Assembly: GCA_965112735.1 (NCBI GenBank)
Contig: OZ218950.1
Coordinates: 4,340,001 to 4,404,000 of the forward strand
DNA length: 64,000 nt
Reading direction: 5' to 3'
Origin: Phaeosaccion multiseriatum
Lineage: Eukaryota > Protista > Ochrophyta, other classes
Shown: positions 1 through 59,206 of the stretch, in pieces
Position numbering within the stretch: position 1 is the stretch's first letter
How the letters are laid out: every line of letters begins with the position of its first letter
Notes under the pieces: model-generated
Database searches by the model: none
Seen by the model: only the letters and a program-made list of their open reading frames with translations
What the model was told of the DNA's origin: nothing
Program-made: the position numbers and the translations under genes

Positions 1-1680
1 GGCGGTGGAGGCGAGAGAACCGGGTCAGAACCATAGTGCCATAGCAGCTGGGGCCTACAACGTCACCAGAGAGGAGTGGCTTGTGGCAAGACGGAGTGGA
101 CCGGCCAGAGCTGATGTGTCCAGCTGTTTGCACGGAGTCACTGTAGGTGCTCATGCCGAGCCGGAGCTACTCGAGTGCATTGAGAAGCGGCACGGGTGGA
201 CTGGTGAGGATGAGCTCATACTGGTCATCTCGACCCTCCCCTGCATCGGTTGTGCCCGGCTACTGGCAGAGCGGAAGAGACAAGGACGCCTGAACTGCAG
301 CGTCATCTTCGTAGGCGACTCCCGCCCTGTCCTGGGGGAGGGGAGGAGCATCCTCACGGAGGCTGGCTTTGAGGTAAGCATTGAGCGAAGGGCGCGGCTG
401 GAACAGAGGCATATGGACAGACAGGCAGGCAGAGAGGCAGGCAGGCACGGAGACAGGCAGGCAGAGAGGCAGACACGACGGAGCCGATGCTGATCCCTTT
501 CCCACTCCACCCTTTCCTCCTTCCCCCCCCCCCTCCTTGCTTCACACGTGCAGGTCAAAGAGGACAGCTGGTATTGCTCCGGGCTGCTTCCCCGCATGAG
601 GCGGGTCGAGGTTCTGAAGGGCAAGGAGGTTACTGCCACTTTCGCGGGGGGGAAAGCTCATTGGCGGACGTGGCACAACGCAACTCTTCTTGTCCTGGTG
701 CAGCCCTCGGCGGAGGAGCGCAGGCTTTATGGAGACTTGCTGCGGCGGTGTCTCCTTCTCAAGCTGACTGCGGACCCAAAGCGTAATCAGCGACAGACCA
801 AGAGACCGTTGCAGCTCGAGGCGTACCGCCGGGCTTGCAGGGCTGCCAAGAAGGCCAGCGAGGGAGGGAGGGTGTCGATGATGGCGGTGGGGAGCGATGT
901 GTTGACTCTCTCCGCCGCCATGGACGGGATTTCAGTCGCGAATCTACGCCTTTCCGCCATACAGTCCATGCCCCTCCATCGCGATGGGCAGGAAGTCTCG
1001 GGCTTCAAGCCGGTCATCCTGACATCCACGGGGAAGGAGGGGTTCCGGCTGTTCGGGCAGAGATTCCGGCGGCATATGCCCTTTTCGAGCAGCTGTGTCT
1101 CGGGGTCGAAGGCTGATGCCCTCCCGCCTAATGTTGACACGATGGCAGCGGAAGCTAAGAAGGAAAGGAAGATAAAGAAGCTGGAGAAGCGTGAGCGTGC
1201 CGCTCAGCAGAACCGACGAGTCGCCGAGCAGGTCCGCACCAATATGTTCGGCTTCCTCCCAGTCATGGCGGAAGAAGAGGATGGTGGTAGAGCTGGGGCG
1301 ACTGTCTTGCGCAATGTTCGGCTCGCCCCAGCGCGAATGGCCGCGGACACCAAGAGGAAGGAGGCGGAGGCAGCAAAGAGGAGAGCTGCATTGGCCGAGA
1401 AAAAGCCCAATCAGCGCAGGAAGAAGACTGATGCAAAGGGGGAGGAGAACAAGAGCACGAGCACCACGTCTGTGACCATCGATCCTCGGGGGCGGCCAGA
1501 GGTGTTGAGGGTGCTGAGGGGAGGAGCTGCCAGCCGAGGGGTGGCACAATGTGCTTTTAACGACGCCACGCTGCTGAAGGATTTGGTGGAGTATTTGCCT
1601 CGCTTCCTCCTGGACAAGGGGATGAGTGGACAGCCGGACAATACCATGAAATGGGGTGAGATTGATGCTGAAGGGAGTGT

Positions 1681-1711
<31 letters not shown>

Positions 1712-4700
1712 GAGTCCAAGTGCTGTTGGCGGACGCTTTGCGAGCTCTGGAGGGGCTTGAGTGCTAAACTCGAGCCGTGGTGGGGCGTGGGAAATGAAAT
1801 GTCATTCTCAGCACAGGACTCTGAAGAGCAGGCGAGGGCCGCGTTTGATGGATCCCTACCTCATTGTGTCGATGGTGTCGTCGGGGGCCACCTCAAACTG
1901 CGCTTCCTTTCTGGCCGGGGCTAAGAGACTTGAAGCACTCTTGGGGCTCTGGCGTCATGACGAGTTGGGGGGTCTGCCCCGCCAGTTTAGCCTGGAGTCA
2001 CCACAGACCTACGGGGGCGCGAAGGAGCGATTCAACGCGTGCTTGGGGCTGTTGGTGAAGCTTGGCGCGACGAGTGCCGGTGGTCGAGACAAGCTCAAGC
2101 TTTGGGCGGCGCAGGGGGTGAAGGGCCATGAAGACGAGCAGTTGCCCGGGGCTCTCACAAAGGCGCAGAGACGGGAGTTCGGCAAGGCGAAGAAGGCAAT
2201 GCAGCAGAGGAAGGAGACGGAGCAGAGGGTGGAGGACACCGCGGCGATGCGCGACGGAAACGCACAAGCGACCGCCGAAGTCATTGAGAAGAGGACGCAG
2301 GTGGCGGAGCAGCTCGCGATAAAGGGGGGGGCGGGCTGGACGGCCTCTCTTTCGTGGCATACCGATGAAGGCCTTGACACGCAGCTGAGGAGCCTCATGG
2401 CGCCGCTCCTGTTACAGGAGAGGTATCGAGGGCATGAGGAGGCGGCGTTGGAGGAGGCCAAGTTGCTGCTCCAGTCTGCGAAGGAAGAAGAGATTCCCTG
2501 GGTGACTGCCTACGGCACCGGAAAGGTGGAGACAGAGGAACCGCCACCCCCTATCCGCGAGACGACTCATATAGCTTTTGCGGCCAATCTTTACTCCTTC
2601 ATCACGCAAGGGAGACGAGGACGCTGCGTGCTGGTGAGTGGCTGGGGCAGAGGAAGGAAGAGGGAGAGAGGAGGAGGGGAGGATGGAGGGAGCGGGGCCT
2701 GTCTCGCCCTTGTATAGCTAGCACCAGGGACAGATGAGGCTCCAAATGTCGACGATGGTCCGAATTCCAACATGTGTGCCACGCTCTTTTTGTACCTGCT
2801 GCATCTGACGCTGCCAACTCACACGCCTTTGCCTGCCCCTCTTCTCAGATGCAAAATGGCTTTCTCAATGAGTTGGCCCTGTACATGTCGAGAGCCGAGT
2901 TTGTGCCCTCCCTCACGTACAAATACGCCGGCCCCAAGAAAGGACCTACCACCCCACAGCAATTCCGAGGACGGCAGGCCGGGCAGCAGCTCCCCAGCCC
3001 TTTGACTCTTCTCCGGGATGTCACGGCACAGGTGAAGAAGCGGAGCACCGTGCGACGACGACCCCTCGCGGAAGAGATTGCCATTCTCGCTGTGGAGGCT
3101 CACAAGGCAGTCCACGGCCCGGAGGGCCAAGATAACTACCGTGAGACCTACCAGCAAATGGCGGCCTCTGGGGCCCTAACATACGCCCAATCAGCGGAGT
3201 ATGAGACAGACGATCAGCGGAAGCTTGTGCTGGACGCTGCAACAACTGCTGGTTTTATGGCAGCGAGAGGAGGGGAGGAAGCAAAGCAGGTGCTGGAAAC
3301 TGCGCGCGGGCTCGTGAAGCGGTGCGTCGATCTGGGGAGGGGGGTCGGGAGGGGAGCCACTGAGGAAGAGCCGGGGCCTCCAGAGCATTCTGTTGAGCAG
3401 AAGGCTCAGGAGCAGCAGGAGAGAGTTCAGAGCGCATACTCCACTCTTGCCAGGCAGGACAGTTGGCAGGGGCTTACGAGCGGCCCGGTGTTTGAGGCCC
3501 GCCTTGCCGCTCTTGTCGTCACACAACATGTCGGAGAGACTACACTCGCCAACACAGAGACTACACTCAGCTACGTGTATGGCGGCGACAAGTGCAGGGC
3601 AAAGGCTGCGGCGGAGATCCTTACCATGGCTCTACAGCATGCCGAGCTTGGCACTGAGCAAGCGTCTGTGGACACAATCAAAGAGCGTTGTCTCCAGCCT
3701 CCGTCGAGGCGCTTTCTCCGCAAATCCGTTGACCGACAGGTGGACGCGATGCAGACACACGTTGGGGTTGGGCGATTCCGTGGGGAGCGCGGCGCAGCGG
3801 AGCGTGGGGAGAGGCAGGTGCAGAGCACCGAGTACTTTAGGGCAGGGCGTTGTGGGGACCTCAATCCGGGCGAGTTTGGGCTGCAGTACCGGAAAGATGG
3901 GGTGGGAGGGGGTGAAGCCCTCGTCGAGAAGGAAGCGAGATGGATCGAGAGGGTGACCGTGTGCGTCACGGAGGGGCACACTCTGACCCTGTTCGACCAG
4001 ACAGGGAAGCCCAGGCGGCGCCTGTGGCGGGAGCCAGCCCACCCGGCGGATGGGGGGACGTCGGTGACGCCAAGGTGGCTTTGCGTGACGGGCCCCGTGC
4101 TTGGCGACTGCGCCCATGGTACATCGCTCCATCTCCAGTTTGAGGATGACCGACCAGCTGTTCCGCAGATGGAAGTGCATGGGGGGGAGAGGGGGGAGGA
4201 GAAGGAGTTGGAAGACTACCGCAACCTCCGCCGTGAGATTCTTGGCGAAGCGGGTCCTCCTCGGGTGGAGGGGAGGGGTGAGGGAGAGAGGGAGGGAGAG
4301 AGGGAGGGAGAGACGCAGACGGGGAGGGATAGAGGAAGGGAGGAAGGGAGGGAGGGAGGGAGAGAGGGAGGGAGAGAGAGATGGAGGGGGGGAGAGAGGG
4401 AGAGGGAGAGGGAGAGATGGAGGGAGGGAGAGAGGGAGAGAGAGAGGGAGGGAGAGAGGGAGCGGATGGATGAGTTGGTGAAATTGCGTCTTCAAGCCAC
4501 GGAACTTCGTCGGGAGCTGCAGGCACTCACAGGGGTAAGTACTCTTAGGAGTAGAAGTAGTAGTAGTAGTAGTAGTAGTAATAGTAGCAGCAACAGTAGT
4601 AGTAGTGGTAATAGTTATAGTAGTAGTCAGCAGCAGTAGCAGTAGTAGCTACCTTGTCATCTCAAAGAACTCCTTTGGCTTGTGGCTTGTTTCCCTCTTC

Positions 4701-5911
4701 GCCGACATCAGGTCAAGGAATGGCGGAGCCGCCGCAAGAAGAAGAAGAAGCTGTCGAACGTGGACGCCAAGATCAGGAAGCTGGACCGAGCCATGGCAGG
4801 AGAGCATGGCCAGGACAGAAAGTGGCGCGGTCTCCGTGTGGAGGACCTTCCTCCGCGCTCTGGCCTCCACGCCAACACCAAGTATGTGGAAGTGCTTGAT
4901 CCATTCGAGGGGCACCAGGAGCCAGGGTTTGGCGACAAGGTCCGGCAGTATCTTGGAAAGCTAACCCCCGAGCAAAGATGGGGAGGGGCCGACCCCGGAG
5001 TGCGGACGTTCCTGTCCATCTGGTGTGCCCACACTGGGCGCTTCTTCAGGGTGGGTCACGGCTTCTCCGCCTCCATGCGGCCGCTGCAGAGGAGGATAGC
5101 GAAGCTGGAGAGCCAGGTGTGGCAGGCAGCGCAGGTGAGGAGGATGCGTGCCTCGCCCAAGTCTCTTGTCGTGGCTGATGTCACTTTCTAATCCCTCCCT
5201 CCCTCCCTCCGCCCGCGCACAGAGTGGACAGGACACGCGGGCTCTTCGCCTGGAGGCGGCCAAGATGCGGGCGCTCTTGCACCACAAGACGCTCGTCCTC
5301 CACACGATAGCCATACGGCTCATCGTGGCCAACTTCACGCACTTTGTGTTGCCTCCTGTCCGGGCCCAGGCATGGTCCAGCCGGCGGGGCCGCCAGATCT
5401 CGGGGCTGCCGAGGGATATGGGGAGGGACATGGACGCCCTCTCCATGGGTCTATTCCGCCAACGGCTCAAGACGGTGCGTGTGTGCGTCTGTTGCTTGTT
5501 GTTGGCTTGGTGTTGGGCTGGCTGGCCTGGCTGGTGTCGCTCAGACTGAGACACCTCCGTCCCCATCAGCAACCCTCGTGTGGCTGAGCTAACAATTCCT
5601 CTCGTTGACTTCCTTCTTTGGCTGCCCGAACTCCTCTCGCTCAGGCCATCGCCTCTCCCTCCTGCTCACTAGTGCTGCGTGAGCCCAGCGAGGCCTTCAC
5701 CACCAAGACATGCACCGCCTGTGGTGCATTCAATGAGTGCGTGGGGGCCAAGAAGGTGTGGACTTGCCCCACCTGCAAGGCCACGCTCTTACGGGACCCT
5801 TGTGCGGCCCGAACAATCACTCTGTTCGGGCTGTACGACTTCTCAAAGGCATGGCCAACTCCAAGGCCACGCCACCCACAACATCTTCCCAGTAAGTGGC
5901 TGGCTGGCTGA
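1..5911 (+). CDS. Giant spliced Fanzor (TnpB-family RNA-guided nuclease) with N-terminal Zn-dependent deaminase domain; 5'-partial; one apparent +1 frameshift near 1908
   Basis: Reconstructed exons <1-373, 554-2633 (frameshift ~1905-1912), 2849-4534, 4712-5134, 5223-5474, 5645-5911. All five introns are GT..AG and phase 0. Deaminase motifs HAE and PCIGC lie in exon 1. RuvC-I ADPGVRTF, LSMGLFRQRL, SEAFTTKTCTACG, WTCPTC and RDPCAARTI lie in the last three exons. A further possible intron 5892-5962 would extend the ORF to 6168. Confidence 0.65.
2..373 (+). CDS. Cytidine/deoxycytidylate deaminase-superfamily domain (exon)
   Basis: AIAAGAYN (like the dCMP-deaminase/TadA 'G.N' strand), HAE at 152-160, LVISTLPCIGCARLL with PCxxC at 239-253, then a hydrophobic strand VIFVG. 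Donor GAG|GTAAGC at 374. Confidence 0.8.
4712..5911 (+). CDS. Fanzor2/IS607-TnpB-like RuvC and zinc-ribbon module (3 exons)
   Basis: RuvC-I Asp at 4991 (GGADPGVRTFLSIW); bridge-helix-like LQRRIAKLESQ; Pro at the canonical RuvC-II position (FVLPPV, ~5352); alternative Glu at 5690 (SEAFTTKTC); CTAC at 5711-5722; CPTC at 5765-5776; RuvC-III Asp at 5795 (RDPCAARTI). Confidence 0.9.
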
Positions 5912-6059
5912 TTGCGTCCCTGCCTGCCTGCCTGCCTGCCTCTCGCTAATCTGCCTGTCCAGCCAGGAGGGCAGCCAGCCCTTGTTGCTTACTTGCTTGC
6001 TGCCTGAACAAGAAACACCTCCTGAGTTTCCCTGCCTTGCTTACTTGTCCTCACTCATC

Positions 6060-6200
6060 ATCATGTGCTCGGGCGGGCAACGAATCAACAACAGCTGGGG
6101 CTTTCGAGCCGGGGAAGCAGTCGGCTGCCTCCGGGCAGCCAGCGACTGTACAACACATGGTGTTGTAGGTGAGTCATAGCTTAATGCGTTGCTTGCTGCT
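6060..6200 (+). ncRNA. Candidate Fanzor omegaRNA scaffold (boundaries uncertain)
   Basis: Directly 3' of the RuvC gene. Stem CAGTC-GGCTGCC/TCCG/GGCAGCC-agc-GACTG at 6118-6148 is immediately followed by stem TACAACAC/ATG/GTGTTGTA at 6149-6167. GCTCG and CGAGC at ~6067-6109 could also pair. Confidence 0.4.
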
Positions 6201-6469
6201 GCCTGCTGCTCCCCTCCATCCCCAGCCACGCCAGAGTCAGAAAACATTTCCTCTTTCCTGACCTGCCCCTCTCCCCGCCCGCCCCTCTGCCCTCCGCCCC
6301 TGCCCTCCGATTGCCTGCCTCGTCGGCGATTTTGCTCTTCCCGCCTTTGCCAAAAAATTCCAAATTTCTTTTTCTTCTCCCTTTTCCGGGCCGGCGGTCG
6401 ACGGTATAAAAATGCGCCGGAGAAAAGGCCTCCATTCGTTCACACACATGTCTATATGTCTACTTCTAG

Positions 6470-7767
6470 CTATGCACCCGCTGCTCCCCGGTCCGGCTTT
6501 CTTGCGTCCCGCCACCGCCAGAAGGCAGCCAAGGAGCTTCCGATGAGCGAGTGAAGGGTGGCGCTGACCGCCCCGGGTATGCACGTCAGAGGGTTGCTGA
6601 AAGCCCTCGACGCCAGGACAGTCGCCAAAGCACTATTCTGCATGCCCACCTTTGACACAAAAGGCGCGCAAAGGAAGAGGGTTGAGACACAAGGGGACGG
6701 GGGCGGGGTGAGGCTTCCTCCCATTATACTACACCGAAGAGCCAGAACAGAGGGAGCATCCTCTTCGTACACAAGTGCGTAAGGGTAGATAGACGGGTCA
6801 GAGATGGCACAGACAGACACGCGAGCCGACCAGAGGCCCTCCCTGCCAAGAGCCGTAATACGACCTCAAGCCCCTGCCCCCCGCCCCAGCCTCCCCCCGC
6901 CCCCTGTTCTACACCGCTCAGCGGCTCGTCCTCTCCTCCTTCCGTCCCGTCCCTCCTCTTCCTCCCCTTGCCTTCCTCCCTGACCTCGATGGAAATGGTT
7001 CGAGCGCTCTTGTCCGCCATGCCCAAGGCCCTCGACAGACCATATCCGGCAGAAAAACCCAACACGTGAGTAGCGACGAGTGCACCGACGATGGGGATGC
7101 CTTTGGAACGGAAAGGGACGGACGGAGATACCATGTTTGTTGAGCAGACAGTAGACGCAGCTACAAAGGGAGGTACAGCAAACACACAGGCAGGCAGGCA
7201 GGCTCGCAGACAGGCCGGCCGGCAGGGCTCATTCGCGTCTTGCTTGTGTGTCGACGCGGTGGTAAGCACAAGGTAGCGTGGCCGCAGCAGCCAAACAGTA
7301 GCAGCAGTGCTGGTGTGACTTGTTTTCAACATGTGTAGTGGAGCCTACCTGACGTCAGCAGAACAGCAGCGTTGGAGGCTACGATGCTCCCGCAAATGAG
7401 AGCCACGAGCACTACACAGAGCAGCGGGGTCTTGGTGTGTCAGGGGGGGGGGGGGAGAGGAGGAAAGGAGAGGAGAGGGGAGGAAAGGACAGGGGAGGAA
7501 AGGAGAGGAGAGGAGAGGAGAGGAGAGGAGAGGAGAGGAGAGGAGAGGACAGGGGAGGGGAGGGGAGGAGACGAGAGGAGAGGCATCAGCAAGCAGGGCC
7601 GATACAATTGAGGGGGGGGGGGGGGGAGCACTTGATTGGGGAGCCAAGGACACACAACAGGGGGGATGGAAAGCGAGAGCGTGTGTGTGGGTACATTGGC
7701 GTGTCATGCAAATACTACACCCATTACGCTGATAGTCAGGTCAAGGGTTCCTAGCAAATACTGCTCG

Positions 7768-7824
<57 letters not shown>

Positions 7825-8374
7825 ACACGAGCCGCAGCCTCCCTCCACACTCACATAGGGGGCGATTTTGGATGTGAAGTCCTTGGCGAATCTGTTGAGC
7901 ACAAGCCCCGCCAGTACCGGAGCGAGTACGAGCTTGGCCGTGGAGCTGAAGAGCGCTCGGCCGCTTACACTCACCGCGGCCGTCCCGCCTGTAGGTGTGT
8001 ATGTGTGTGTGCGTGAGTTGGGAGTGTGGGTGCGCGTGGGAGGTCACAGGAAGGAAAGGGAGGTATAGCGTTACTCACTTCGCGCATGAAAAGATTGAAA
8101 CCGTCTATGCGTATGCATGTGGGAGAGTGGAGGAGCAGGGTAGGGGGCGGGCTTCTGCGAGCTTAGAAAGGAAGTGTAACGGACAGTGACAGGCAGTTTG
8201 AAAACGCACCTGATGCCACGGATCCGAAGGCGGCTCCGCGGAGGAGGCCTTGGGTGAGCAAAGGAGTCATGATGGAGGCTGCGACGGTGGACGCCGAGGT
8301 CATGAGCACACTTAGAGCGACATCCCCCTGTGGCGATAAAAGGTGGGTGCAGCAGCAGCAGTAGCAGCAGTAGC

Positions 8375-8427
<53 letters not shown>

Positions 8428-9652
8428 AAGCAGCAGCAGCAGCAGATTTTAGTACGAGTAAGATTTAAGCAGTGGGCGCAGAAAGCACGACTCTCAATAA
8501 CAGCACCTTGTCAAGCTCCACATGCCTTTCGGTACCTGAGCAATAAGTGTGACCAAGTTGCTTGCCGTTCCTCCCGGGCAGCAGCCAACCAATATCACCC
8601 CCGCAGACAGGGCGGGCGACAGGCTGAAGAGACGTGCCATGGAGAAGGCCGCGAGGGGCATAACCGTGTACTAAGGGGGGGGGGGGATAGATGCGAGAGG
8701 CAGGGCACGCAGCGCAAGGTATAGAAGAGAGAGAGATAGACCAGGCATCAGGCTCGAAGGGAGAGGGGTGGTGGCCGTCCAGTTCACACACACATGTACA
8801 CACTTACACACACATGTCCAAACACACACACACACACACACACACACTCAACATAAGTGGCCTGCCTTCCCCCCCCCCCTCTTTGATTTCTGGACGGAAA
8901 GGAGGGCAATCTGAGCATCACATACCTGCAGCATCGTGCCAAGTATGACTGGCCGGGGGTTGACGAGCACCCTCTTGAAGTCCGAGAACTTCATGGTCAT
9001 GCCCATGCAGATCATTGTAATGGAAAGGGCTGCAGTCACGTACTCGCCTGTAAACCACGTCATCTGCGAGTCGGGGGAGAGATAGAGGAGGAGGGGGAGG
9101 GGGAGGAGGGGGGGGGGGGGTGAACGGAATACCTAGGGTAGGTCAAGGAGGAGGGGGAGGTGAATGCAATACCAAGTATGGATCATAAGGGCGCAGGAGC
9201 GTCTCTTTTGAAGGCAGGATGTTCCAATTTCTTACCGTGGCGGGTCTGAGGACACCAAGAACAGCAGCTGAGCTTACCCACAAAGGGAAGGCGCTCGTGA
9301 GCTTATCGAAGGCCTGCTGCACGCTGTTTTTTCGTTGGCCTGTACTGCTACCGCTGCCGCTGCCCATTTCCTCCGTCACCTCGGTCCCTTCAATCGCCTC
9401 TGTTGTTGCTCGCCTTTGGCCACCTCTTCCCCTTGCTTTGCTGAATACTCGTTCTACTGCTGCGGTTGCTGCGCTCGCGCTCGCTCGTTGCCTAACAGGT
9501 CTTGAGGATCGCTGCAGCAGCACCTTGGAGACCATTATCGAGTCGGAAGTGAAACCGCTTGCGGGGACGAAAACCAGAGCGATAAGCAAGGCAGGCATCA
9601 ACCTCCTTCTTGAGCCTCTCGCCTCTCCCCGTTTCTCACTGAACCCCGGCAT
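6470..9652 (-). CDS. Plastid-targeted bile acid:sodium symporter (BASS/SBF) family transporter, multi-exon
   Basis: Exon peptides [59 protein letters not shown] and RTISIEV|[13 protein letters not shown]-terminus [16 protein letters not shown] resembles a bipartite plastid leader. The start may be 9598. Confidence 0.9.
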
Positions 9653-10112: not shown

Positions 10113-11634
10113 ATGGGTGCTGGAGCGGGGGGGTTATCCACGGCAGAAGAGGAGGGAGAGACGGAAGGCATGAAGGGGGAAGTAGCTGTGCCCGCAGCAG
10201 GCGCCAGCAGCGGAGGTGACGACGACGCGAAGAGAGTCGGCTGCGTCGCGGACTTCATGGAGTTTACGGGCTGTACGAGCGAGGAACAGGCATTGTTTTT
10301 CTTGACCGGTTGCGATTTCGATGTTCAGGCTGCCGTGTCCCTCTTCCTGGAGACGGGCGGACAGCAGCGGCAGCAGCCGCAGCCGCAGCAGCAGGACCAG
10401 CAGCAGCAACAACAGTCATCACAGGAGATGCAGGCGGGCTCAGGCAGTGGATGGTCCTCTGACCCTCGCCCTGACCCAGCCTCTTTCCCGGGTCAGGAAA
10501 GTGGGGATGCTTCTTCAACTCCTTGGGGGGCTTGGGGGGCTGAGGAGCAGGAGGAGGAGGAGATCCGGGCGCCTCGGCCAGCCTTCCAGGACACGCTGCT
10601 TGGGGCAGGGGGATTCGGTGGTGGGCTAGGGGGCATGGTGCGTTGTGGTGTGTTGTAGAGTGTGCCTTCACTTTGGACAGGTCCGCATCTCTCTGTGTCT
10701 TCCCCCCCTTGCCATTTGGCACTACCTCTTTCGCAAATCAGGGGTCAGGAGAGGAGGATGCAAGGGGGTGTCTGCTGTGAGCAGTATGGCGTTCGGATCC
10801 TTCCCTCCTTTCCTTCCAGGCTCTTCAATGTTGCGTTTTTTTGCCTCCCTGACTTCCTCCGCTCTTTCTTGCCCTTTATCCTACGGCCTCTCGTCTGTTG
10901 CCCCACCCACCCACCCGCCTGGGACGGATTCAAGCCTATACCGAATCAAAATTGGGCAAGCGGAGGAGGAGCAGGAGCAGGAGCAGGAGCGAGGGCGGCG
11001 GCGGGCCGTGCTTTGCAGGCCAAGAGTCGCGTTCGTACGCAGGCCAAGGAGGAGAAGGACCTGGGCATTGAGTGGATGTTCAAGCCCCCAGAGAAGCTCT
11101 CGCTCACGGAACCTTTTGACGCGGCGCGACAGAAGGCCAAGGAGGAGAACAAGTGGTTGATGGTGAATCTGCAGGACCATAAGGAGTTTAATAGCCACTT
11201 GCTCAACAGGGACGTCTGGGCTGACGAGACTATACAGCTCTTCATGAATGAGAACTTTGTGTTTTGGTGAGTGAGTGTTTGTGTGAGAGAGAGGGAGGCA
11301 GGTATACAGCTGCTTTTCATGAATGAGAATTTCTTGTCTTGGTGGGTGAGTGCAGTGTGAGAGAAAGGGAGACATTGAAGGAGGAAGAGAGAGGGAGGGA
11401 GGGGATAAGAGAGGTGGGGGAGGAGGGAGGGAGAGGGAGGGAGAGAGAGCGAGGGAACGAGAGCAAGAGGGTGACAGAGTTTGGGGGGCGGGCTGGGTGG
11501 ATGGGTGTGAGGAAGGGGAGAGAGGGAGGAACTGGGCTTTGGAGAGAAGGCCTGTACAGTCCGCTCCATTTCCGAGTGTGACGGGTGGGGATTTCTCTCT
11601 TCCCCTCTACAACAATTCCTTCGCCTTGTATTTG

Positions 11635-13550: not shown

Positions 13551-13826
13551 GGAGGACGGAGGAGGAGGAAGGGCAGGCAGACATGAGGGAGGAGAAGAAG
13601 AAGTGGGGCAGGCAGGCGGGAGGAGGCGACGGAGGTTGTCTCTCCTCCTCCTTCTGGCTCGAGTTAATAAAGTGTACCATTGCTGCTTAATCGCGAATCA
13701 ATTTATTTATTATTATTGTGCAGGCAAAAGGTCAAAAGGGAAGGAAAAAGAAGGCGAATTTGACTTTAGGTTATTGTATACCCCCCCCATGTTCGCCCAC
13801 TTGCGCTGCCCCTCTTGACAGCACAC

Positions 13827-16800
13827 ATGTGGGGGAGGGGTGGTGAGCGTAAGGCATGGGCGAGGCCTGTGGGGTGGCTACTGCTAGTCCTGCAGGCAGT
13901 GGTGGCCTTTGTGGCGGTGGGCTATGTGGTGTTCGAGCAGCAGCGGCAACAGTTGCAACACGAAGGCCCAGGCGATACGTTTTCCCAAGGCCTCTTCTCT
14001 CGGCAGCAAGGCGTGGTGGGGTGGGATGCACAAGGGGGGGAGAGCAGTAGGAGAAATCTAGAGAATGCAGACGCTGGGGCAGACTACTTTGCTCAGCAAA
14101 TCGCAGCAGCAGCAGCGAACGCTGGACCCAGTAACACAGGTACGGAGACGTACTCTGCGCCTCCCCAGCACAGTGACCACAGTGGGCCGGGAGGGGGACA
14201 CGGGATGGCGGGGAAGGAGAGCGCTGCGGCATTGGCGCACAAGGCACTCTTCCCGCTGAGTGCCTGGGACTATGCGGGTATTCTGTGTGCAACTCTGGGG
14301 CTGATGATCGCCGCAGGGGGGGGGATCGGCGGGGGAGGGATCTTGGTGCCCATCTATATTCTCGTGATGCGCTTCCAGCCCAAGTACGCCATTCCCCTGT
14401 CCAACATTACCATCTTCGGCGGGGCCATCACCAACACGGTCCTGAATCTTCCAAAACGGCACCCGGACGCCGACAGGCCTCTGGTGGATTGGGACCTTAT
14501 TTTGGTGATGGAGCCCCTCACCATTGGTGGGGCGTTAGTGGGAAGCTTTGTCAACAAGGTAAAGGTGTTAGAAATGCAATTAGATACTCTCCTCCTCTTG
14601 ATTGAAAGCTGTGTGCCCCTTCTAGGTAAAGTTCCTGTACCTGACCGACGCACCCTCCGCATGAATGGCTTCTGTCTATCCCTCACTACTGTCTTCCTTC
14701 CCCCACCCTCTGTCTGACAAGTGCAATGCGAGAACCTACCCATACTGTACTATCTGCGCACGTCACCATGTAAACTCCACCCCCCCCCCCCCCCTTTGTC
14801 TGCTGCGCCATGTGCGGCCATCTGTGTCATTACTTCCGTCCCTTTGGTCCAGGTTCTGCCGGAGTGGATTTTGGGCTTGTCTCTAGTGATACTCCTCACC
14901 GCCACGGCCAAGCGTACACTGGACAAGGGCCTCAAAGTGTATCGCAAAGAGACCAAGCAGCTCGCCATGGAGGTGTGTTGGGAAGAGTTGGTTAGGTAGC
15001 GCATCAGCACAGCCTCTAAAAGAGAGCGGGCACGTATGCATCTCCTCGTCTTCCCCCTTTCAGCACACCGCTCCCCCCGTCTTCTGCTGCTTCTTGCTCC
15101 GGCACACCTGCTGACTGACTGACTGGCCGACCGACTGGCTTGACTCGCCCACTCCACGTTCATCGCTCGCTCGCCCCCGCCTCCCCCATTAACTCGGTCT
15201 TCCACCTCTCTCTATCTCTCTCCCTCTCTCTCTATATATATATATTTATATGTATACATATCCTCTCCATCTCTCGCTCCCCTCCTACCCCTCTTCAGAG
15301 ACAACCCTCGAGCGAGCTAACCACTCTTCACGAGCACGAGCTGGAGGACCAGGACGGAGAGGAGGGAGAAGACTTGCTGGACAGCTCCGAGCGCAGTGTA
15401 GAGAAGGAGTACTCCTTCGAACTCAAACAGGTCGGTTCGGTCTTTGGTTCTGTCTATCTATCTGTCTATCTGTCTATCTGTCTGTCTGTCTGTCTGTCTA
15501 TCTGTCTGTCTATACTCGGGGGCTCTTGCTGGCGTGGGAGAGAGAAAGAGAGAAAGAGAGAGAGAGGAAGAGCAGCGAGACAAAGTCTCTCTCGCCCTGA
15601 CCCCTTCTCTACCCCATGCATGGCTGTGCCTGTTTTCTCTTTTACCTCCTTCCCCGCCCCCCAACCCAACCCCCCCGTCACTGGGCCCTACCCCACCGAC
15701 CGGGCACGCATTATCATCACGCATTATCATCAGGTTGTGGACGAGGAGAGAGACACTCCTCTTTTTAAGGTGGGGGTGTTGACGGGTGTGTTTATTGTGG
15801 TGCTGGTGGTCAACCTGTTGAAGGGAGGGGGTGCGTTCCCCTCCCCCGTGGGTATTGAGTGCGGCTCCATGGCTTTTTGGATGGCTTCTGTGTTCATTTT
15901 CGCGTGGGTGCTCTATGTGTCGTCAAAAGTGCGGCTATATTTGATCCAGAGGCACATTTTGAAAGAAAAGGTGAGTGAGAGAAGAGGGAGAGAAGGGAGA
16001 GAATGCAGTAGAGAGAGGGGAGGGGAGCGCGAGGCCGAGAGAGAGAGGGAGGGAGAGAAAGCGAGAGGGAGGGAGGGAGAGAGAGAGATCTGCAAGCAAG
16101 ATTGTTTGAAAAGGAAAGCGTATACGCCACAATGAAGAATGGATGGGGCTGTGTACGAGAGGAGACAAAAGAGGAGACGAGGCTTGCGAGGCAAGTGAAG
16201 GAAGGAATTTCATCCCATCCCCTCCCCTCCTCTCCCCTCCCCTGTCTGCCCCACACCACAGGTTGGATACAAATACGTTGAAGGGGACGTGCGATGGGAC
16301 GAACAAGCAACCCTCAAGTACCCAGGCATGTGCTTCTTTGCCGGCTTCTTTGCGGGTCTGTTTGGGGTGGGCGGAGGCATTGTCAAGGGCCCACTCATGC
16401 TGGAAATGGGGGTCCACCCAAGCGTGGCCAGCGCCACCAGTGCCGTGATGATCCTCTACACGAGCTTCACAGCCACGACGTCCTTCCTCGTGTTCGGGCT
16501 GGTCAAGGTGGACTACGCCTGCTTCATGTTCGTGGTGGGACTCTTGGCGACCTTCGTGGGACAGGTAAGGTGGAGCGTAGGGGAGGGGCACCTAGAGAGA
16601 GAGAGAGAGACACAGAGAGAGAGAGAGAAGAGAAAGGGATATATCGGAGAGGGAGATAGAGGGAGAGAGATTGCTGTCAACCACCGAACTCCCGGATCGA
16701 TGCTAACCACTGTCTTGGCATTCTCTTCCCTGCCCATCCCCCCCCCCCCCCCGCTGCCTTGGTGGCCTGTTCACGCCCGAAGGTGTTTGTGAACTACTTG

Positions 16801-26056: not shown

Positions 26057-28265
26057 ATGAACGGCGCAACCGTGGTCGACACTTTTCCTGAATCATCATT
26101 GGCGCTGGTGAGAACGTTGGAGGGAAAGACTGAGTGGATCCCGGTGACGGGTGCAGAAGAAGCGGGCTGGGAGGAGAAAGTGAAAAACTGGGCTCAAGCC
26201 AGGAACCTCATCATCCCAGGCGAAGAAGTATCTGAAAGAGTAGGGACAGAAGCAGGGCAAGAGCAAGAGCAGGAGGAGGAAGAGGCTAGCGTCGAGGTCA
26301 AGAAGCCCTCGTCCAGCAGTAGGACAGTCGGCGACGGTCCAGCAGCAAAGGGGTGCTCGATCGAGAGCGTCAAGAGCCGCCCGGGGGCAGGTCAGGCGGA
26401 GTCGCCTACCAAGAGTGCAGCAGAGGAAGGCCAGCCCACCTCGATGCGAGAGTTAACACCCGTTGAGAGGGGTAGCGAAGTGACTGCAGCATCAAAGAGC
26501 TCCGGCAAGAAGTCCGGAGGGTTCTTTTCCAAGGGCTTCCTGCTCGGTGGCGGCACGAAGAAGAAGAAGAAGAAGAAGCAGAAGAAGGCAGAAGAGGAGG
26601 ACCAGCGGGCAAGTTCTCCTGCGACTGTAACCGTTTCGCCACTATCGCTCTCTGCGAAAGAGGCAGAGTTCAATATGGGTAGTAGCAGCAGCACTACCCG
26701 CAGCAGGGAAGAGGAGCACACAATACAAGGCGGGGGGCAGTCTCCGCCCCCCTCGCCATTGGCAGCAGCATCAGGAGCAGCAGCAGAAGAAGCTCGCACA
26801 GCAATGTTCGCTTCCGGTGATACACACAAAGTCCAGAGTCGCAGAGATCTCTGGACGAAAAAGGCGCCTGGTGGGAGAAGCAACAGTGTTGACACGTTTT
26901 CCGACACATCCAGCTGTAGTGCACAGAGTAACGAGGACGAGCAAGAGGGAGAGGCCGAGAAAGGCGCGGATGCGGGCCATGCTAGTGACAACGAAGAGGG
27001 GGAGGAGGAGGGGGAGGAGGAGGAGGCAGCCGCAGCAGGTGGAGGGGGAGAGCTCCCAGATGAAGAAGACGATTGGCTGGCGGGCACTTCGGCTGCTCGC
27101 CTGACCACCAAGAGCGGTGCCGCCAGTAGCAAGAGACGGAAGAAGAAGGGCAAGAAGGGGAAGAAAGGGGGTAGTCAGCAGCAGCAGCAGCAGCAGGAGG
27201 AGGAGGAGGAGCAGCAGTCGTCCGCTCCCGTCTCGTCGGTGAAGAGTCCAAAGGCGGCAGGCGAGGGAGACCGGCAAGGGGGGGCAGGGGGTGCTGCTAC
27301 AATGAGCAAGGCGGCAAAGAAGAGGGCGAAGAGAAAGTCCAAGGCCATGGGAGGGGGCGGGGGCGGTGGACCGGAGGAGGAGAAGGACGAGGGGTACTCC
27401 ACAGAGGGTGTCTCTCCTTCCTCGTCGCCTTCGCCTCAGGCCGGAGGGCAGATGAGCCGGACTCGGTCCAAGCGAAAAGAAGGTGATGAGGACAGATAGT
27501 CAGGAGTTTAGGAGGGCGTCATTTCTTCTCCTCCGTAACATCGGTCCTATTCTCTCTTTTCTTGTGTGTGTATGTGTGCCTGTGTGAATGTGTGTGCTTG
27601 GCGTCTTTGCTCCGGATGTGTGTGTGCTTGGCGCTTAGCTCCGGATCCGCTGCCCTCCTCTCTGATGCTCGCCCCCATACAACTACAGTCCCCCATCTAC
27701 CGCCGTGTTGCATCCCCCTCGGGTGTCTCCTGCGTCCACTCATTGAACAAACAAACGAATGAACGACCCCCCCCATCCCCTGCCCTGCCCCTTTGCCCCG
27801 CCTTTCACTGCCTATGCCTACCTGCCGGTCTGTGTATCTGTCTACCTCTGCTCTGACGGCTCAGCTGTGTCTTTCGGTGGCGTGAGAGAAGTGCTGCTGG
27901 AGAGACGCGTGGGGGGCTGTGGCATGCCGAGTGAGGGCACTTGGGCCCTGCACTTGGGGCAGAGCGTTTCCGAAGTCGACATGACGGTGGACGAGTACGA
28001 AACCGCCAAAGCACATAGCCTGGAGAGCCGCACAGAGGCGCTGAACAAGAGGGAGAAGAAGCTCGCCACTGGGGTAAGTTGCAGAGTACGTGTCCCGTAC
28101 TTGAAAATAGACTTGTCCCATTCATGTATGCGCTTACTTTTGCTCCCGCGTGTATTGGGATAGGTGACACGCCCCCCCTCCCCCCGGGCTCTTTCAGTCT
28201 TGAAGCTCATTACAAGCTTTCAGACCTGCGATTGGTTTGCTAATCCGCCAATTGCCATATATGTG

Positions 28266-30961: not shown

Positions 30962-32856
30962 ATGGCTACGACATGGAGTGGAGTGGTAAGTCGTGTAATA
31001 CTCCGATTAACCGTGCTCGAAAGACCTTACCTTTTTTTTCTCTCTCTCTGTCTCTCTCAGGTCACTGGGCTTGTCTTTGGGGGCTTGCAGGGCGCTGTGG
31101 TGATGGGACTCTTCGGAGCCTGGCGCCATAAGCCCGAGTACCGCCACATCTATCAACCTGCGGCGGCCAAGTAAGTGTGGAGAGCAGCGCAGGAAGATAT
31201 GCTGTGAGGGAAAAAGAGCACAAATAATGCGGTTGAGAGGATGCGGACGTGGGGGCGGGAACAGGGTTGAAGCAGGGCACTTAACTTAACAAGCAAGGGC
31301 ACTTTAACTACAAGCACAGAGTGGGGTGCTCCTGCTTCCCAGGGTACCCCTCCTGTTGCTCCTACTGGGCCATGTCTTTCGCGAAGATCTGTGGTTTACC
31401 TGTTGAAATGCCCGACACAGAACAATTGGATCTTCGCTCACCGTGCGGCAATTCTTCCACCGCATCTCCGTTCACCTCAGCATGTAGTCTGCCTCTGGCC
31501 TCCCTGTGGAACAACAGAAACCATGCCATCCCCTAACCTTGCTCTTTGTCACCACCCTCCCCATCCAATTCTTTCTCTCCTCCTGCCTCCCCCCCCCCCC
31601 AATAGACGCCCGGACCGCGCTGTCGGCGAGCCGAAGGGCCCGTGGTACAAGGAGGCCCTGAAGGTGGGCGACAAGGAGCTACTGCACTGCGTGGGTCTGG
31701 ACTCGTACATGCTCGTGCGCTTCCTGCATATGTGCTTCAAGCTGTGCCTGGTCGGGGTGGTGCTGGCGGTTGGCATTCTCGTGCCAGTGTACTACACCAA
31801 CAAGTTTGACACTACGGAGGTGATCAAGGAGGACACCAACTTGGACAAGATCACCCTGCCCACTGGCTACCTCAGGCCCACCATTGCGCGCCTCAACGCG
31901 AGTACGTACCTCCTCCTGTGAAGAGCAATAGAGAAGACGAGAGAGAAAGAGAGGAGGAGGAGGTTGGGGGAGCAAGCCGAGAGGAGGATGGGTCGGTGTG
32001 GCGGAGTAGGAGTAGGAGCTCAAAAACCTAAGCGCCCTTCGACAGTCCATCGTTCTGAGCTCTCTGCCTCCCTCCCCCCTTCTCCCATACCCTCCTCCTC
32101 TTCATCACGCCAAACAACACAACGCAAACAGGCAGCGACCGCTTGTGGGCATCCGCCGGCGTTTTCACCATCTTCATCCTGTTCTTCCTCAAGCTCATCC
32201 ACGACGAGTGGAAGAACTTCCTGCCCCTCCGCCTGGACTACATTGTGGACGGAGACGCCGACAGTGGCCCCGAATACCGCAATTCCATCCTCGTGGAGGA
32301 GCTGCCCATGGACCTTCGCACGGACGGTGAGTCAGGAAGTCAGACAGTCAGGCAGTCAGTCAGGCAGTCAGTCAGGGAGGCAGGGAAGGAGATGGTCAGC
32401 AAGATGTACAACGTAACGCAGGAGGACTCCTCGACTTGCTTTGCTTCCTCCCCTGTTTTGACTGACTCTTGACAACTGAGACCAAAACATCAGTCTCTCC
32501 CTCCTCCTCCTCCTCCTCCTCCTCCTCCTCCTCCTCCTCCTCCTCCTCCTCCTCCTCCTCCTCCTCCTCCTCCTCCTCTTCCTCCTCCTCCTCCTCCTGC
32601 TCCTCCTCCTCCTCCTCCTCTTCCTCCTCCTCCTCCTCCTCCTCATCCTCCTTCTCCTCCTCCCTCTCCCTCTCCCTCAACCCTACTTGACCATGTGTGC
32701 ATCGCGAGTCGTCGTCTTCACGCCTTCCATCCCCCCTTCCACACACACATCACACATCACCCTTTCCATACGACATGACACCACCTCTAACCCTTTACCT
32801 TCCACGCCCACCCCCTTCTTCCCCATCCATGACCCATCTAACCCTAACCCAACAAC

Positions 32857-32888
<32 letters not shown>

Positions 32889-35218
32889 CACCAACAACAA
32901 CAACAGCCGCTCTGGAGACCCACTTCAACCAAAAGTACCCCGGCACCGTCGTGGGCGCGCGCGTGACCCAGCACACAGAGGAGGTGGACGTTCGCACCGA
33001 GGCACGCACCAAGTCAATGATCCTGTATGAGAACGCCGTGGCGGCCAGACACGCCAAGCCAGAGAAGGAAGCAAAGTTCAAGGTTGGAGGTGTGCTGTGC
33101 TGTGGTGGCAAGAAGGTGCCTGCCGAGCCACACCACCAGGCGGAGATGGAGAGGTTGACCAAGGAGGCTTACGAGGAGCTGGAGAAGGTCAAGCAGCTGC
33201 CCAAGGAGAAGGCTTCCTGCAACACTGGCTACGTGACTTTCAACACGCCCCAGGGCAAGATGGATGCGCTACGAGACAGGAGTCGCAGGTGCGGGTTGAA
33301 GGGGAAGGAGGGGAGGGAGGGGAGGGGGAGAAGGCGGGGGGGGTGGTGTAGAGAGGTAGAGGGTAAGAATGGAGGGATGGAGGAAGGAGGGAGGGAGGGA
33401 GGCAGAGAGGGAGGGAGGCAGAGAGGGAGGAAGGACCGGGGATACCACTCCCCATACGCCTCCTGATGATGATGATTGACAGTTACGTCGCGCCTCCTCA
33501 TATAACTGACTTGTCCCTGACCTGCCCCCCCCCCCCTCTCCCTCTCCCATCCCCCCTCACTTGCTCCCTCTGTCTCTCCCATCATGTCCCCCCCCCAGTG
33601 ACATGTCCGGCTCGCTGCTGAAGTTCCCCGCCCCTGCCCCGAAGGACATCATCTGGAAGAACATGACGATGGACCGCAGCAAGACCAAGATGATTGCCTG
33701 CGGCTGGTGCGTGTTCTGGAGCATCGGGATGCTCTTGTGGGTCATCCCCGTCACCTTCGTGCAGGTGCGTAAGTGAAGTGAAGTGAAGTGAAGTTAGTAA
33801 GGAGGGTTTGTGTGGCGATGATGAGGACACGCACGTAAGTAACGTAAACACGTATAGTCGGGGCGGCGGTGCCCCTCTTACCCCCAAACTAAACAGCGCC
33901 TCCCCATTCATTGCTTTGCATGTCAATGGAAACAAAACAACACAACAGTCCATCGCCAATTTGGAGGCCACGTACGAGCTCATTGGCCTGGGCGACAAGG
34001 AGGACTTCCCCATCGACACTGGCAGCGCCGCCTACGGCATTATTGCCGGCCTCCTCCCCGTCATCTTCCTCGCCATCCTTATGGCCGTCGTGCCCATGCT
34101 CATCTACTGGAGCTCCACTCAGTCGCAAAAGGTCAAGGCTCGCAGCACGGCCGACACGTACACCCTCAAGTGGCACTTCGGGTACCAAATCGCCAACCTG
34201 TGGCTCATTGTACTGTCCGGATCGCTCATCAGTCAGCTCAGCCCCATGATCAGCGACCCGGGTAGCATCCCGAAGACCATTGCCATTGCCATCCCGGGGG
34301 CGTCTCAGTTTTTCATGATTTCCGCCATTCTCGCTGCTTTGGCTGGGTTGAGCATGGAGATTAGCGGCGCGGTGAAGGTGATTGTGTTCCGCCTGCTCAA
34401 CAAGATCCTGGGCTCCGATTCCAAGAGCGACCGCACCCTGGAGGCCTCGCGCAACCCCCCTGCCTTCAAGTGGGGCTGGTTGTACCCGCCCATGATCTTC
34501 CAACTCATGGTGGCCTTCTTCTACATCTACATTACGCCCATCATGCTTGTGCCGTTGGTGGTCTACTTTGGGTACGCTTGGCTGGTATACAAGTATCAGG
34601 CACTGTTTGTGTACGTGCAGGAGAGTGAGGGAGGAGGAGCCTACTTCTTCCTCCTGTCCAAGATTATGATGGGCGTGGCGTACATGGGAGAGTTGGTGTT
34701 CATCGCCTACATGAACATTAAGGAAGCACCCGAGCAGAGCACGCTGGGCATCATGTAAGTGTGTGGGTTGTGGTGTGGAGGGGAGAGAGCGGCGATACTG
34801 GTCGCGTGTAATGTGTAATCCGTCCCTTTGTCGGCCATGGAAACTTGCTTATCCCTCCTCCAACATCTGTTCTATTGCGGGTCTTCTTACGGCGCTGTAC
34901 TTTCGACCAATCTCTCGCCAATGTGCTCACTCACTCCCCCCCCCTTCATACTCCACCCAACCCACCCACAGCCTGCTCGTTGCGACCATCTGCACGCACT
35001 GCCACGTCGGCCGCAAGTACATCAACGCCGCTGACCGAACGGCGACCATCGCTGCACGAGTTGAGGAGACAATGCGCAACAGGCAGCCAGAGAACCTCAC
35101 GACGGATTCCCTCAAGGTGTACACGCAGGAGGCGTTGAGGCCGGAGATCTGGAACGAGGCCCCGAGGGGGTACAGGGAGGAGGCGTTCGTTGAGGGGCTT
35201 GACAAGGCCGTTGTGTGA
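30962..35218 (+). CDS. OSCA/CSC1/TMEM63 (ERD4) mechanosensitive Ca-permeable channel
   Basis: VGLDSYMLVRFL, SILVEELP, GYVTFN, APAPKDIIWKN, multiple TM helices, PIMLVPLVVYFGYAWLVYKYQALFVY..ESEGG. Confidence 0.92.
32500..32665. repeat. (CCT)n intronic microsatellite (similar runs at 37780-37955 and 47740-47880)
   Basis: Direct inspection. Confidence 0.95.
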
Positions 35219-43000: not shown

Positions 43001-43685
43001 ACGGGTCAGAAGGCCGGCAAGGGCTGGTACAGGTCAGTCAGTCAGTCAGTCAGTCAGTCAGTCAGTCAGTCAGTCTTTGTCTGTGTCGATGGATGTGCTG
43101 GTCCCAAGAGAGCTTTCCTAAAGACTGGAACCATATTATCTGCTGCTCTCCGGGTGGTGTCCATATGTGTGCCTGTTTATCTGCCTGCCTGCCTCTAATG
43201 TATGCCTTGCATGTGTATCTATCTGCCTGTCTGGCTCCCTTCCCATCCTCCTCTCCCACAGGTACGAGGGCTCCGATCGCCGAGCCCTGGACGACGAAGA
43301 GGTAGATCGACTCATCTCGGAGCACCGGAAGGAGACGGGTATGAAACCGCGGAACATTTCAGACGAGGAGATTGTTGCGAGGTGCTTTTACCCTTTGATC
43401 AACGAGGGCTTTCAGATTCTGGAGGAGGGCATTGCCGACCGCCCGTCCGACATTGATTTGGTGTGGGTGTATGGCTACTCCTGGCCTCGGTGGAGAGGAG
43501 GCCCCATGTTCTGGGCGGATGAGATGGGCCTCTCTACCCTGTTGAGTGAGCTGGAGCGGCTCGGGAAGGCCTTGCCGCAAGTGTCCCACTGGAAACCCTC
43601 GGCGCTGCTCAAGCGGCTGGTGGACACGGGGGAAAGCCTTGGAGGGTTTTACCGACGGAAAGCAGCCATGAGAAGCAGGCTTTGA
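40044..43685 (+). CDS. Peroxisomal multifunctional enzyme (enoyl-CoA hydratase / 3-hydroxyacyl-CoA dehydrogenase; EHHADH-like)
   Basis: [44 protein letters not shown]; [10 protein letters not shown]; VVEAVFE; TNTSTL; GMHFFSPAH; GFVGNRML; RGGPMFWAD; C-terminal PTS1 SRL*. Confidence 0.96.

Positions 43686-59175: not shown

Positions 59176-59206
<31 letters not shown>

Follow-up and report, generated by a model that had tools for sequence, protein, structure and literature searches.

A stretch of 64,000 nucleotides from the alga Phaeosaccion multiseriatum (assembly GCA_965112735.1, contig OZ218950.1, positions 4,340,001 to 4,404,000 of the forward strand; hereafter the window) opens with a long chain of exons, positions 1-5911, whose first visible exon resembles a zinc deaminase and whose last exons encode a RuvC and zinc-ribbon module of the Fanzor/TnpB family. 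A first-pass annotation, made from the letters of this DNA, had read the chain as a single protein: a natural deaminase-Fanzor fusion of about 1,700 residues, likened to a base editor.

Layout of the Locus

Open frames on the forward strand tile positions 1-5909 (2-490, 494-1921, 1761-2714, 2738-4636, 4649-5188, 5139-5546, and 5609-5908 in the stop map). Every stretch there that lacks a long open frame falls inside a proposed intron, in keeping with the earlier description of one strand with no intergenic-looking gap. The frame of the first exon is open from base 2, and the only stop that it meets before position 1922, a TGA at 491, lies within intron 1. With X placed at a single break in the frame, the spliced product reads through 1,693 residues within the window, and the chain is the longest coding-like one in its 64 kb. 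The two deaminase motifs (CAT GCC GAG at 152-160; CCC TGC ATC GGT TGT at 239-253) and all five intron boundaries (Table 1) proved to be exactly where the first-pass annotation had placed them. Its caution that the N-terminus lies elsewhere was also borne out: the unit begins upstream of position 1.

Each exon piece shows the pattern GC1 > GC2 < GC3 (GC content by codon position, about 0.65/0.48/0.70), as does an exon of a host gene elsewhere in the 64 kb, that for the multifunctional enoyl-CoA hydratase/3-hydroxyacyl-CoA dehydrogenase (MFP). The five introns are of the GT-AG type, all in phase 0 and with pyrimidine-rich CAG acceptors, and they resemble the introns of that MFP gene. Simple repeats occur in introns and exons alike: intron 1 carries a (CAGG)n microsatellite at 418-472, and two microsatellites lie in frame within exons, namely (GCA)10, which encodes poly-Gln, at 1681-1710, and (GGAGGGAGAGAG)n, a Gly/Glu/Arg run, at 4267-4462. 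Repeats of the CAGG/CCTG type recur in introns and at other places along the window.

Table 1. Exons, introns, and neighboring features, in window coordinates.
Feature	Position	Strand	Description
Exon 1 (first visible exon, exon A)	2..373	+	divergent CDA-type zinc-deaminase-like domain; 5' end outside window; ends in 'GEGRSILTEAGFE' motif
Intron 1	374..553	+	180 nt, phase 0; GAG/GTAAGC ... GTGCAG/GTC; polypyrimidine tract; contains stop at 491
Exon 2, first part	554..1921	+	frame 2, 456 codons, TAA at 1922; GC 0.62/0.48/0.70
Frameshift zone	1761..1921	.	frames 2 and 0 both open (stop map)
Exon 2, second part	1922..2633	+	frame 0; GC 0.65/0.46/0.75
Intron 2	2634..2848	+	215 nt, phase 0; CTG/GTGAGT ... 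TCTCAG/ATG; strongest splice signals of the region
Exon 3 (exon D)	2849..4534	+	562 codons, ATG start; GC 0.70/0.48/0.68
Intron 3	4535..4711	+	177 nt, phase 0; GGG/GTAAGT ... ATCAG/GTC; (TAG)n microsatellite
Exon 4	4712..5134	+	KKKKK basic patch, like a nuclear localization signal (NLS); RuvC-I GADPGVRTF, catalytic Asp codon 4991-4993
Intron 4	5135..5222	+	88 nt, phase 0; CAG/GTGAGG ... CACAG/AGT
Exon 5	5223..5474	+	central RuvC; 'FVLPPV' replaces canonical RuvC-II glutamate (rearranged type); viral Fanzor alignment
Intron 5	5475..5644	+	170 nt, phase 0; ACG/GTGCGT ... CTCAG/GCC
Exon 6 (exon G)	5645..5911	+	alternative Glu, C4 zinc ribbon, RuvC-III 'RD'; stop TGA 5909-5911
Open reading frame (ORF) 3' end and flank	5780..6200	+	expected place of omegaRNA, a lead only; RNA fold z-score
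Bile-acid:sodium symporter (SBF/BASS) family gene	6470-9100	-	several exons; 3' end converges on the Fanzor, with ~300-560 nt between the stops
Thioredoxin-like	10662-11270	+	Pfam
TauE/SafE exporter	13815-14717	+	Pfam
480-aa ATG ORF	26057-27499		no family match
OSCA/CSC1-like channel (PHM7_cyt, RSN1_7TM)	31271-34755	+	Pfam
MFP gene	40275-43680	+	five exons; mapped with stramenopile homologues
AAA ATPase	57334-60501	-	Pfam
Sel1-repeat protein	61849-63486	-	Pfam

A Fanzor Module in the 3' Exons

The last exon (5645-5908) matches the Pfam family Cas12f1-like_TNB (PF07282) at 32.8 bits, above the gathering cut-off of 26.3. Among PDB sequences it finds UnCas12m4a (7e-6), the mimivirus TnpB-like L79 (ApmFz2, a Fanzor2; 8e-5), and LaTranC (3e-4), and its profile matches include the NCBIfam TnpB models (3e-6) and PADLOC Cas12f (7e-7). 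Relatives of individual pieces of the chain were sought in collections of 1.84 billion representative and 5.8 billion clustered proteins, and in metagenome, viral, prokaryote, phage, and plasmid sets. The zinc-ribbon exon is the sole exon for which these searches returned any: three giant-virus contigs with Fanzors, at 42-46% identity. The corresponding viral protein, of 631 residues (L001:6261-8153, and also L002 and L003, all metagenome contigs), aligns to the spliced product with 27% identity over 212 residues in blastp (E 4e-17) and at 1.2e-11 in phmmer. The alignment continues unbroken over the junctions 5134/5223 and 5474/5645, which validates introns 4 and 5. The viral Fanzor itself matches Pfam HTH_OrfB (weakly, at 205-235), OrfB_IS605, and TNB; about 200 residues before its TnpB core match no family. 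The strings 'DPGVRTF' and 'EAFTTKTC' are near letter-identical between it and the window gene.

Three catalytic residues can be placed by these alignments. The RuvC-I segment GADPGVRTF aligns to 'CGIDPGVRTF' of the viral Fanzor. The relocated glutamate characteristic of Fanzors lies in SEAFTTKTC (GAG codon at 5690-5692) and aligns to ApmFz2 E467; Fanzors have a rearranged catalytic site, and mutation of E467 abolishes ApmFz2 activity (PMC10530073). The RuvC-III aspartate, in LLRD (codon 5795-5797), aligns to DRD, and thus the triad is complete. Between the last two lies a C4 zinc ribbon, CTAC...CPTC. Bao and Jurka (2013, PMC3627910) described the Fanzor/TnpB signature as D-X(125,275)-[TS][TS]-X-X-[C4 zinc finger]-X(5,50)-RD; the spliced product reads D1474, 149 residues, TTKTC, CTAC...CPTC, and LLRD, in agreement with it. 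The Fanzor part also contains introns and a basic RRKKKKK patch. Fanzor genes are known to gain host-like introns and NLSs, and both features of the window gene fit descriptions of Fanzors adapted to eukaryotic hosts (PMC10530073). The curated Pfam match, the PDB and viral relatives, and the intact triad all argue strongly, at the level of sequence, that a true RuvC and zinc-ribbon module of the Fanzor/TnpB family is encoded by the 3' exons, as the first-pass annotation had read the C-terminus.

The amino-terminal half of the effector is harder to discern. Exon 3 encodes, in order, an N-terminal stretch that is P/Q/G-rich and basic, a region of helices, a segment rich in beta structure, the (GGAGGGAGAGAG)n repeat, and a coiled-coil-like end. 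A single-sequence AlphaFold2 model of its 5' part (pLDDT 38) has helices at 1-300 and strands at 344-433, and a Foldseek search with it was uninformative. No Pfam family matches the WED/REC half, and neither blastp nor phmmer aligns it with the N-terminal half of the viral Fanzor; candidates for the HTH_OrfB-like first motif of this half, near spliced residues ~174 and ~890, were picked by eye. Such an unrecognizable WED/REC half is usual for Fanzors, because their N-terminal halves are highly diverged (PMC3627910). Exon 3 probably holds the diverged WED/REC half of this one.

By analogy with other family members, an omegaRNA would be expected at the 3' end of the reading frame or in its flank (5780-6200), although this is offered only as a lead. 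That interval folds more stably than shuffled sequences (z -3.25) and includes a 16-bp hairpin in the coding region at ~5800-5838; the 3' region has no Rfam match. A perfect GTAAGT donor lies at 5892, 17 nucleotides short of the stop codon of the Fanzor, and an acceptor very rich in pyrimidines lies at 6225; the frame beyond 6225 is open to 6554 and would add a proline-rich, low-complexity tail. This pair may mark one more intron at the 3' end, or a different C-terminus.

A Deaminase-Like First Exon

Positions 2-373 encode residues 1-124 of the spliced protein, in which HAE occupies residues 51-53 and PCIGC residues 80-84. The two motifs are 26 residues apart (27 as counted from the Glu of HAE to the Pro of PCxxC), within the canonical CDA range of about 24-36. 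Translated in six frames, the window contains the pattern [HC][AV]E-x20-40-PCxxC once, whereas it turned up in only 4 of 300 simulated windows (0.013 expected per window). Comparison with Pfam places five families of the deaminase clan among the best seven matches of exon 1, every one under its gathering score: SNAD4 (E 0.002, 18.6 bits against a cut-off of 27), dCMP_cyt_deam_1 (E 0.005, 17.1 bits against 25), and, also sub-threshold, APOBEC2, APOBEC_N, and MafB19-deam. The Pfam alignment begins at residue 9 with profile position 19, which implies that the domain starts, with its first strand and helix, at the window edge or outside it.

Fold comparison tells a similar story. A single-sequence AlphaFold2 model of exon 1 (pLDDT 50) follows the element order of the deaminase fold: a strand, a helix at HAE, a second strand, a helix from PCxxC, and then a strand again. 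Foldseek against the PDB lists APOBEC3G-CD2, A3C, and A3H on top, with E-values of 0.05-0.4, and also has A3B, AID, and TadA among its best matches, all with E >= 0.05; in the viral library, dCMP deaminases appear at E > 0.8. This check had been proposed by the first-pass annotation for the spliced protein. Run on exon 1, it returned the expected element order with APOBEC3 domains on top, at low model confidence and without statistical significance. Direct alignment to Escherichia coli TadA and the RibD deaminase domain finds local agreement at PCxxC ('LVISTLPCIGCA') and in a segment after strand 4, 'DSRP-VLGEGRSILTEAGFE', with pairwise E-values of 0.05-0.66.

Exon 1 is quite likely to be a real, if very divergent, member of the CDA fold. 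The claim of an intact deaminase site survives in its signature, its fold order, and its weak matches across a whole clan, and falls short in that no curated threshold is reached. What the domain acts upon is a separate question. Exon 1 might instead not be a nucleic-acid deaminase at all: it could be a nucleotide or base deaminase of the dCMP-deaminase, RibD, or TadA type, a remnant that binds zinc but is inactive, or a motif that arose by chance. The sub-threshold profile scores and the modest pairwise E-values are in line with this alternative, as is the failure of NCBIfam, PDB sequence, phage, and plasmid searches to return anything for exon 1. Moreover, its end motif 'VLGEGRSILTEAGFE' is like 'VAGRGLYRLQQAGID' of RibD, whose substrate is free and nucleotide-like, and the N-terminal portion of the fold lies outside the window. 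Against it stand intact HAE and PCxxC residues at canonical spacing, in a pattern expected 0.013 times per window. The matches span five families of a single clan, the best of them AID/APOBEC-like, and APOBEC3 domains are the top fold matches. Housekeeping nucleotide deaminases, we infer, would normally score far above the Pfam and NCBIfam thresholds, unlike exon 1. On balance this alternative is doubtful. Were it correct, the link of exon 1 to RNA-guided targeting would carry no editing meaning.

The Middle Region

Between the deaminase-like exon and the RuvC exons lie about 1,200 residues with no known relatives. The pieces 554-1921, 1922-2633, and 2849-4267 mix ordinary globular-like hydrophobic content with charged stretches, a poly-Q run, and the GGAGGGAGAGAG repeat. 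None of the middle pieces matches a family in Pfam, NCBIfam, or PADLOC, and no Walker A, helicase, transposase, or extra zinc-finger motif was found in the region. HMMER searches with 2849-4267 against the 1.84 billion representative proteins returned 0 matches, as did word-indexed protein searches with exon A and with 554-1921. Back-translated scans were equally empty: metagenome contigs with exon A and the 5' part of exon 3, viral contigs with exon A, both parts of exon 2, the 5' part of exon 3, and exon 4, and prokaryote genomes with exon A. Nor did tblastn find exon A in phages and plasmids, and no second copy of the unit is present within the 64-kb window. The possibility that the entire unit came from an integrated giant virus was considered and rejected: its introns and codon pattern are host-like, and exons 1-3 have no viral relatives.

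One Gene or Two?

One argument for a single gene comes from intron 2. Its acceptor is 88% pyrimidine; such acceptors occur at 0.33 per kb, and donors of the GTGAGT class at 0.9 per kb, on this strand. Within 1-6500, strong donors are confined to 2634, 4535, 5892, and 6169, and strong acceptors to 2848, 5672, and 6225. By rough estimates made from these site densities, with no formal test, the chance of an in-phase 2634/2848 pair between the flanking stops is about 1e-3, and that of the 374/553 pair about 0.02. A single transcription unit is therefore favored over two genes, since strong splice signals are rare and the 2634/2848 pair is in phase. An ancestral single reading frame from the deaminase exon to the Fanzor is likely, and the unit would presumably have given a single transcript and a single polypeptide.

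Two adjacent genes would divide the locus at the same intron. The upstream one would encode a lineage-specific protein with an N-terminal deaminase (exon A plus 554-2633, with its stop at 2715); the downstream one would be a stand-alone Fanzor of 875 residues that starts at the ATG at 2849. The protein parts lend themselves to this division. Exon D opens with an ATG, followed by a P/Q/G-rich stretch, a KKRSTVRRR patch, and a 'RPLAEEIAIL' motif, which resemble a Fanzor N-terminus and the first WED/REC motif; Fanzor N-termini are disordered and bear an NLS (PMC10530073). A length of 875 residues is usual for a Fanzor, and the giant-virus relatives have 631 residues and no deaminase. Stramenopiles possess lineage-specific proteins in which an N-terminal deaminase precedes long C-terminal regions (PMC3239186), and the genome is compact enough for close neighbors, with for example about 350 nucleotides from the MFP start to a divergent neighboring ORF. 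The DNA between the two parts is less accommodating. Only 131 nucleotides separate the stop at 2715 from the ATG at 2849, and these would have to hold a 3' untranslated region, a promoter, and a 5' untranslated region. Its limits are set precisely by the region's strongest donor and acceptor signals, which are in phase, the coincidence estimated above at about 1e-3. The ATG at 2849 has C at -3, and no stop-rich intergenic stretch interrupts 1-5909. Two separate genes are accordingly unlikely.

A Broken Frame

A one-base indel within 1761-1921 separates the upstream frame from the downstream one. Frame 2 stops at the TAA at 1922, frame 0 is open from 1761, and the two overlap by 160 nucleotides. 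The overlap favors one unit, since separate eukaryotic genes would not be expected to share such a stretch. All GT-AG pairs that bridge the interval were enumerated; the best scores 5.4, against 6.1-7.65 for the accepted introns. A bridging intron was consequently rejected, as every candidate lacks a pyrimidine tract and lies below the accepted quality. Codon statistics give a flat likelihood profile for the position of the indel within the interval. The earlier proposal had warned that one frameshift must be bridged, and the break is present in the assembled sequence. Its single protein of about 1,700 residues therefore stands as an in-phase exon chain that can be read through, and fails as an intact frame.

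The present copy is either a young pseudogene or a gene that carries an assembly indel. If the former, the locus would be a dead relic: a decaying mobile-element gene with a genuine frameshift, from which no fusion protein is made today, and at most a truncated product, the deaminase plus 441 residues (about 565 residues visible in the window). An ancestral fusion is compatible with this. Fanzor copies often decay, and the frameshift has no intron to bridge it. Fanzors are transposon-borne (PMC3627910; PMC10530073), the in-frame (GCA)10 and (GGAGGGAGAGAG)n expansions lie in exons, and no search detected conservation. The host MFP gene, with about 2.2 kb of coding sequence, has no frameshift, which suggests that assembly errors are not frequent here. 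Against a relic, the lesion is the only disabling one in about 5.1 kb of coding sequence, neither domain has lost a catalytic or zinc-binding residue, and canonical signals are kept in 5 of 5 introns. An error in a long-read assembly also looks like a single-base indel. A relic is a serious possibility, a little short of an even chance.

Genomic Surroundings

The window is ordinary nuclear DNA, from a fairly compact genome whose genes contain introns. Its other genes (Table 1) look stramenopile-like. At about 49-50% identity, proteins of Tribonema, Ectocarpus, and Laminaria are the best relatives of the MFP exon; the protein collection has no entry for the alga's own version.

Comparison with Known Systems

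Fanzors (Fanzor1 of algae and protists, the giant-virus 631-residue ORF, ApmFz2/L79) share many features with the window gene: 'DPGVRTF' and the relocated Glu just before [TS][TS]xxC; loss of the canonical RuvC-II Glu; the C4 zinc ribbon and 'RD' of RuvC-III; and introns of host type, a basic patch resembling an NLS, and a strongly diverged N-terminal half. No transposase, terminal repeats, or guide RNA could be recognized at the window gene, and the two differ in what comes first. About 1,470 residues precede RuvC-I here, versus about 450 in the viral relative, and a deaminase-like domain at the far N-terminus is not mentioned in the Fanzor literature examined.

Engineered base editors, in which a deaminase is joined to Cas9, Cas12, TnpB, or IscB, are similar on paper, in that one polypeptide would combine a zinc deaminase with an RNA-guided protein that forms R-loops. 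However, such editors employ a nickase or a dead nuclease and a short linker, whereas here the RuvC triad is intact and about 1,350-1,400 residues separate the deaminase from RuvC-I. On such grounds, the 'base-editor-like' label of the first-pass annotation was an overstatement. Its remark that no natural fusion of this type had been described agrees with the literature searched (Fanzor and TnpB surveys, deaminase classification), which describes neither a natural deaminase-Fanzor nor a natural deaminase-TnpB fusion. The papers listed in these searches that join a Fanzor or TnpB with a deaminase concern engineered constructs throughout.

The multidomain deaminases of protists and stramenopiles (Iyer et al. 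2011, PMC3239186) provide a different precedent. They too combine an N-terminal CDA fold with a long C-terminal region, are very divergent, and are encoded by nuclear genes. Their partners, however, are Rossmann, CCCH, SAM, and Tudor domains, with no TnpB, Fanzor, or transposon protein (PMC3239186), and Pfam and protein searches found no sequence relationship between them and exon 1. Within the superfamily, exon 1 shows affinities in several directions. The HAE...PCxxC zinc site is common to it and to both the TadA, RibD, and dCMP-deaminase branch and the AID/APOBEC-like branch; its 'LVISTLPCIGCA' matches 'LYVTLEPCVMCA' of TadA; the motif after strand 4 resembles that of RibD; and the AID/APOBEC-like branch supplies the best Pfam match, SNAD4, and the top folds, APOBEC3. 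As none of these branches is matched above a curated threshold, exon 1 is not assignable to a branch, nor, hence, to a substrate.

Weighing the Evidence

The explanation that best accommodates these results is that positions 1-5911 form one intron-containing, transposon-derived transcription unit of the Fanzor type in the nuclear genome of the alga, which starts upstream of the window and whose first visible exon is deaminase-like. We would give it a probability of roughly 55%.

Several results weigh against it. No deaminase Pfam match of exon 1 reaches its threshold (best E 0.002); its structural model has a pLDDT of 50 and no significant fold match; and exon 1 is unmatched in NCBIfam (E <= 1) and PADLOC, with nothing relevant among PDB sequences. 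Exon 1 and the middle ~1,200 residues have no homologue, paralogue, or orthologue in the collections searched, and the only relatives found, the three giant-virus Fanzors, carry no deaminase. Transposon ends are absent from 1-7000, where the inverted repeats are (CAGG)n/(CCTG)n microsatellites only. The intact RuvC triad weighs against the base-editor reading in particular, and the ATG, N-terminal motifs, and conventional length of a Fanzor starting at exon D suit a separate gene. Finally, because of the frame break at 1761-1921, the protein of about 1,700 residues is untranslatable as assembled. A single, frame-broken copy without relatives is a lead, not a discovery.

If the single-unit explanation holds, a mechanism can be outlined. 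A complete TnpB/Fanzor effector would be encoded by the final three exons, probably together with the 3' portion of the large exon that precedes them. By homology, this module would bind a guide RNA made at the 3' end of the locus itself, form an R-loop in target DNA, and make a double-strand cut. Were the protein made whole, it would most likely work as an RNA-guided nuclease with an accessory deaminase that acts on nucleic acid within the complex, be it RNA or the displaced strand of DNA. Rather than a cut-free base editor, it would be a deaminase tethered to an R-loop-forming enzyme. 'Nuclease with accessory deaminase' thus fits better than 'base editor', given a nuclease that is catalytically complete and a tether of about 1,350-1,400 residues. 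Use of a guide RNA is a prediction, and any deaminase activity or substrate is putative.

In the most ambitious version of this idea, one Fanzor of about 1,700 residues is, or until recently was, encoded at the locus, programmed by guide RNA and equipped with an active nucleic-acid deaminase, and would serve as a natural mutator or editor that is guided by RNA. That version is quite improbable. If true, such a protein might be used by the mobile element itself, or might have been domesticated by the alga against other elements or viruses.

Implications

A deaminase-Fanzor fusion is a plausible and novel, though unproven, architecture, and the present copy of it may be a pseudogene. Even a weaker reading, a Fanzor with a giant, relative-less N-terminal extension that includes a deaminase-like fold, would extend known Fanzor architectures, since Fanzors so far have been described only with short, disordered, NLS-bearing N-termini. 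If the fusion is real, a zinc deaminase and a TnpB-family effector would have been joined in a natural gene, whereas the RNA-guided deaminases in the literature examined are all laboratory constructs. Such a gene would provide a potential new compact scaffold for editing, and would ask what a transposon, or its host, gains from guided deamination.

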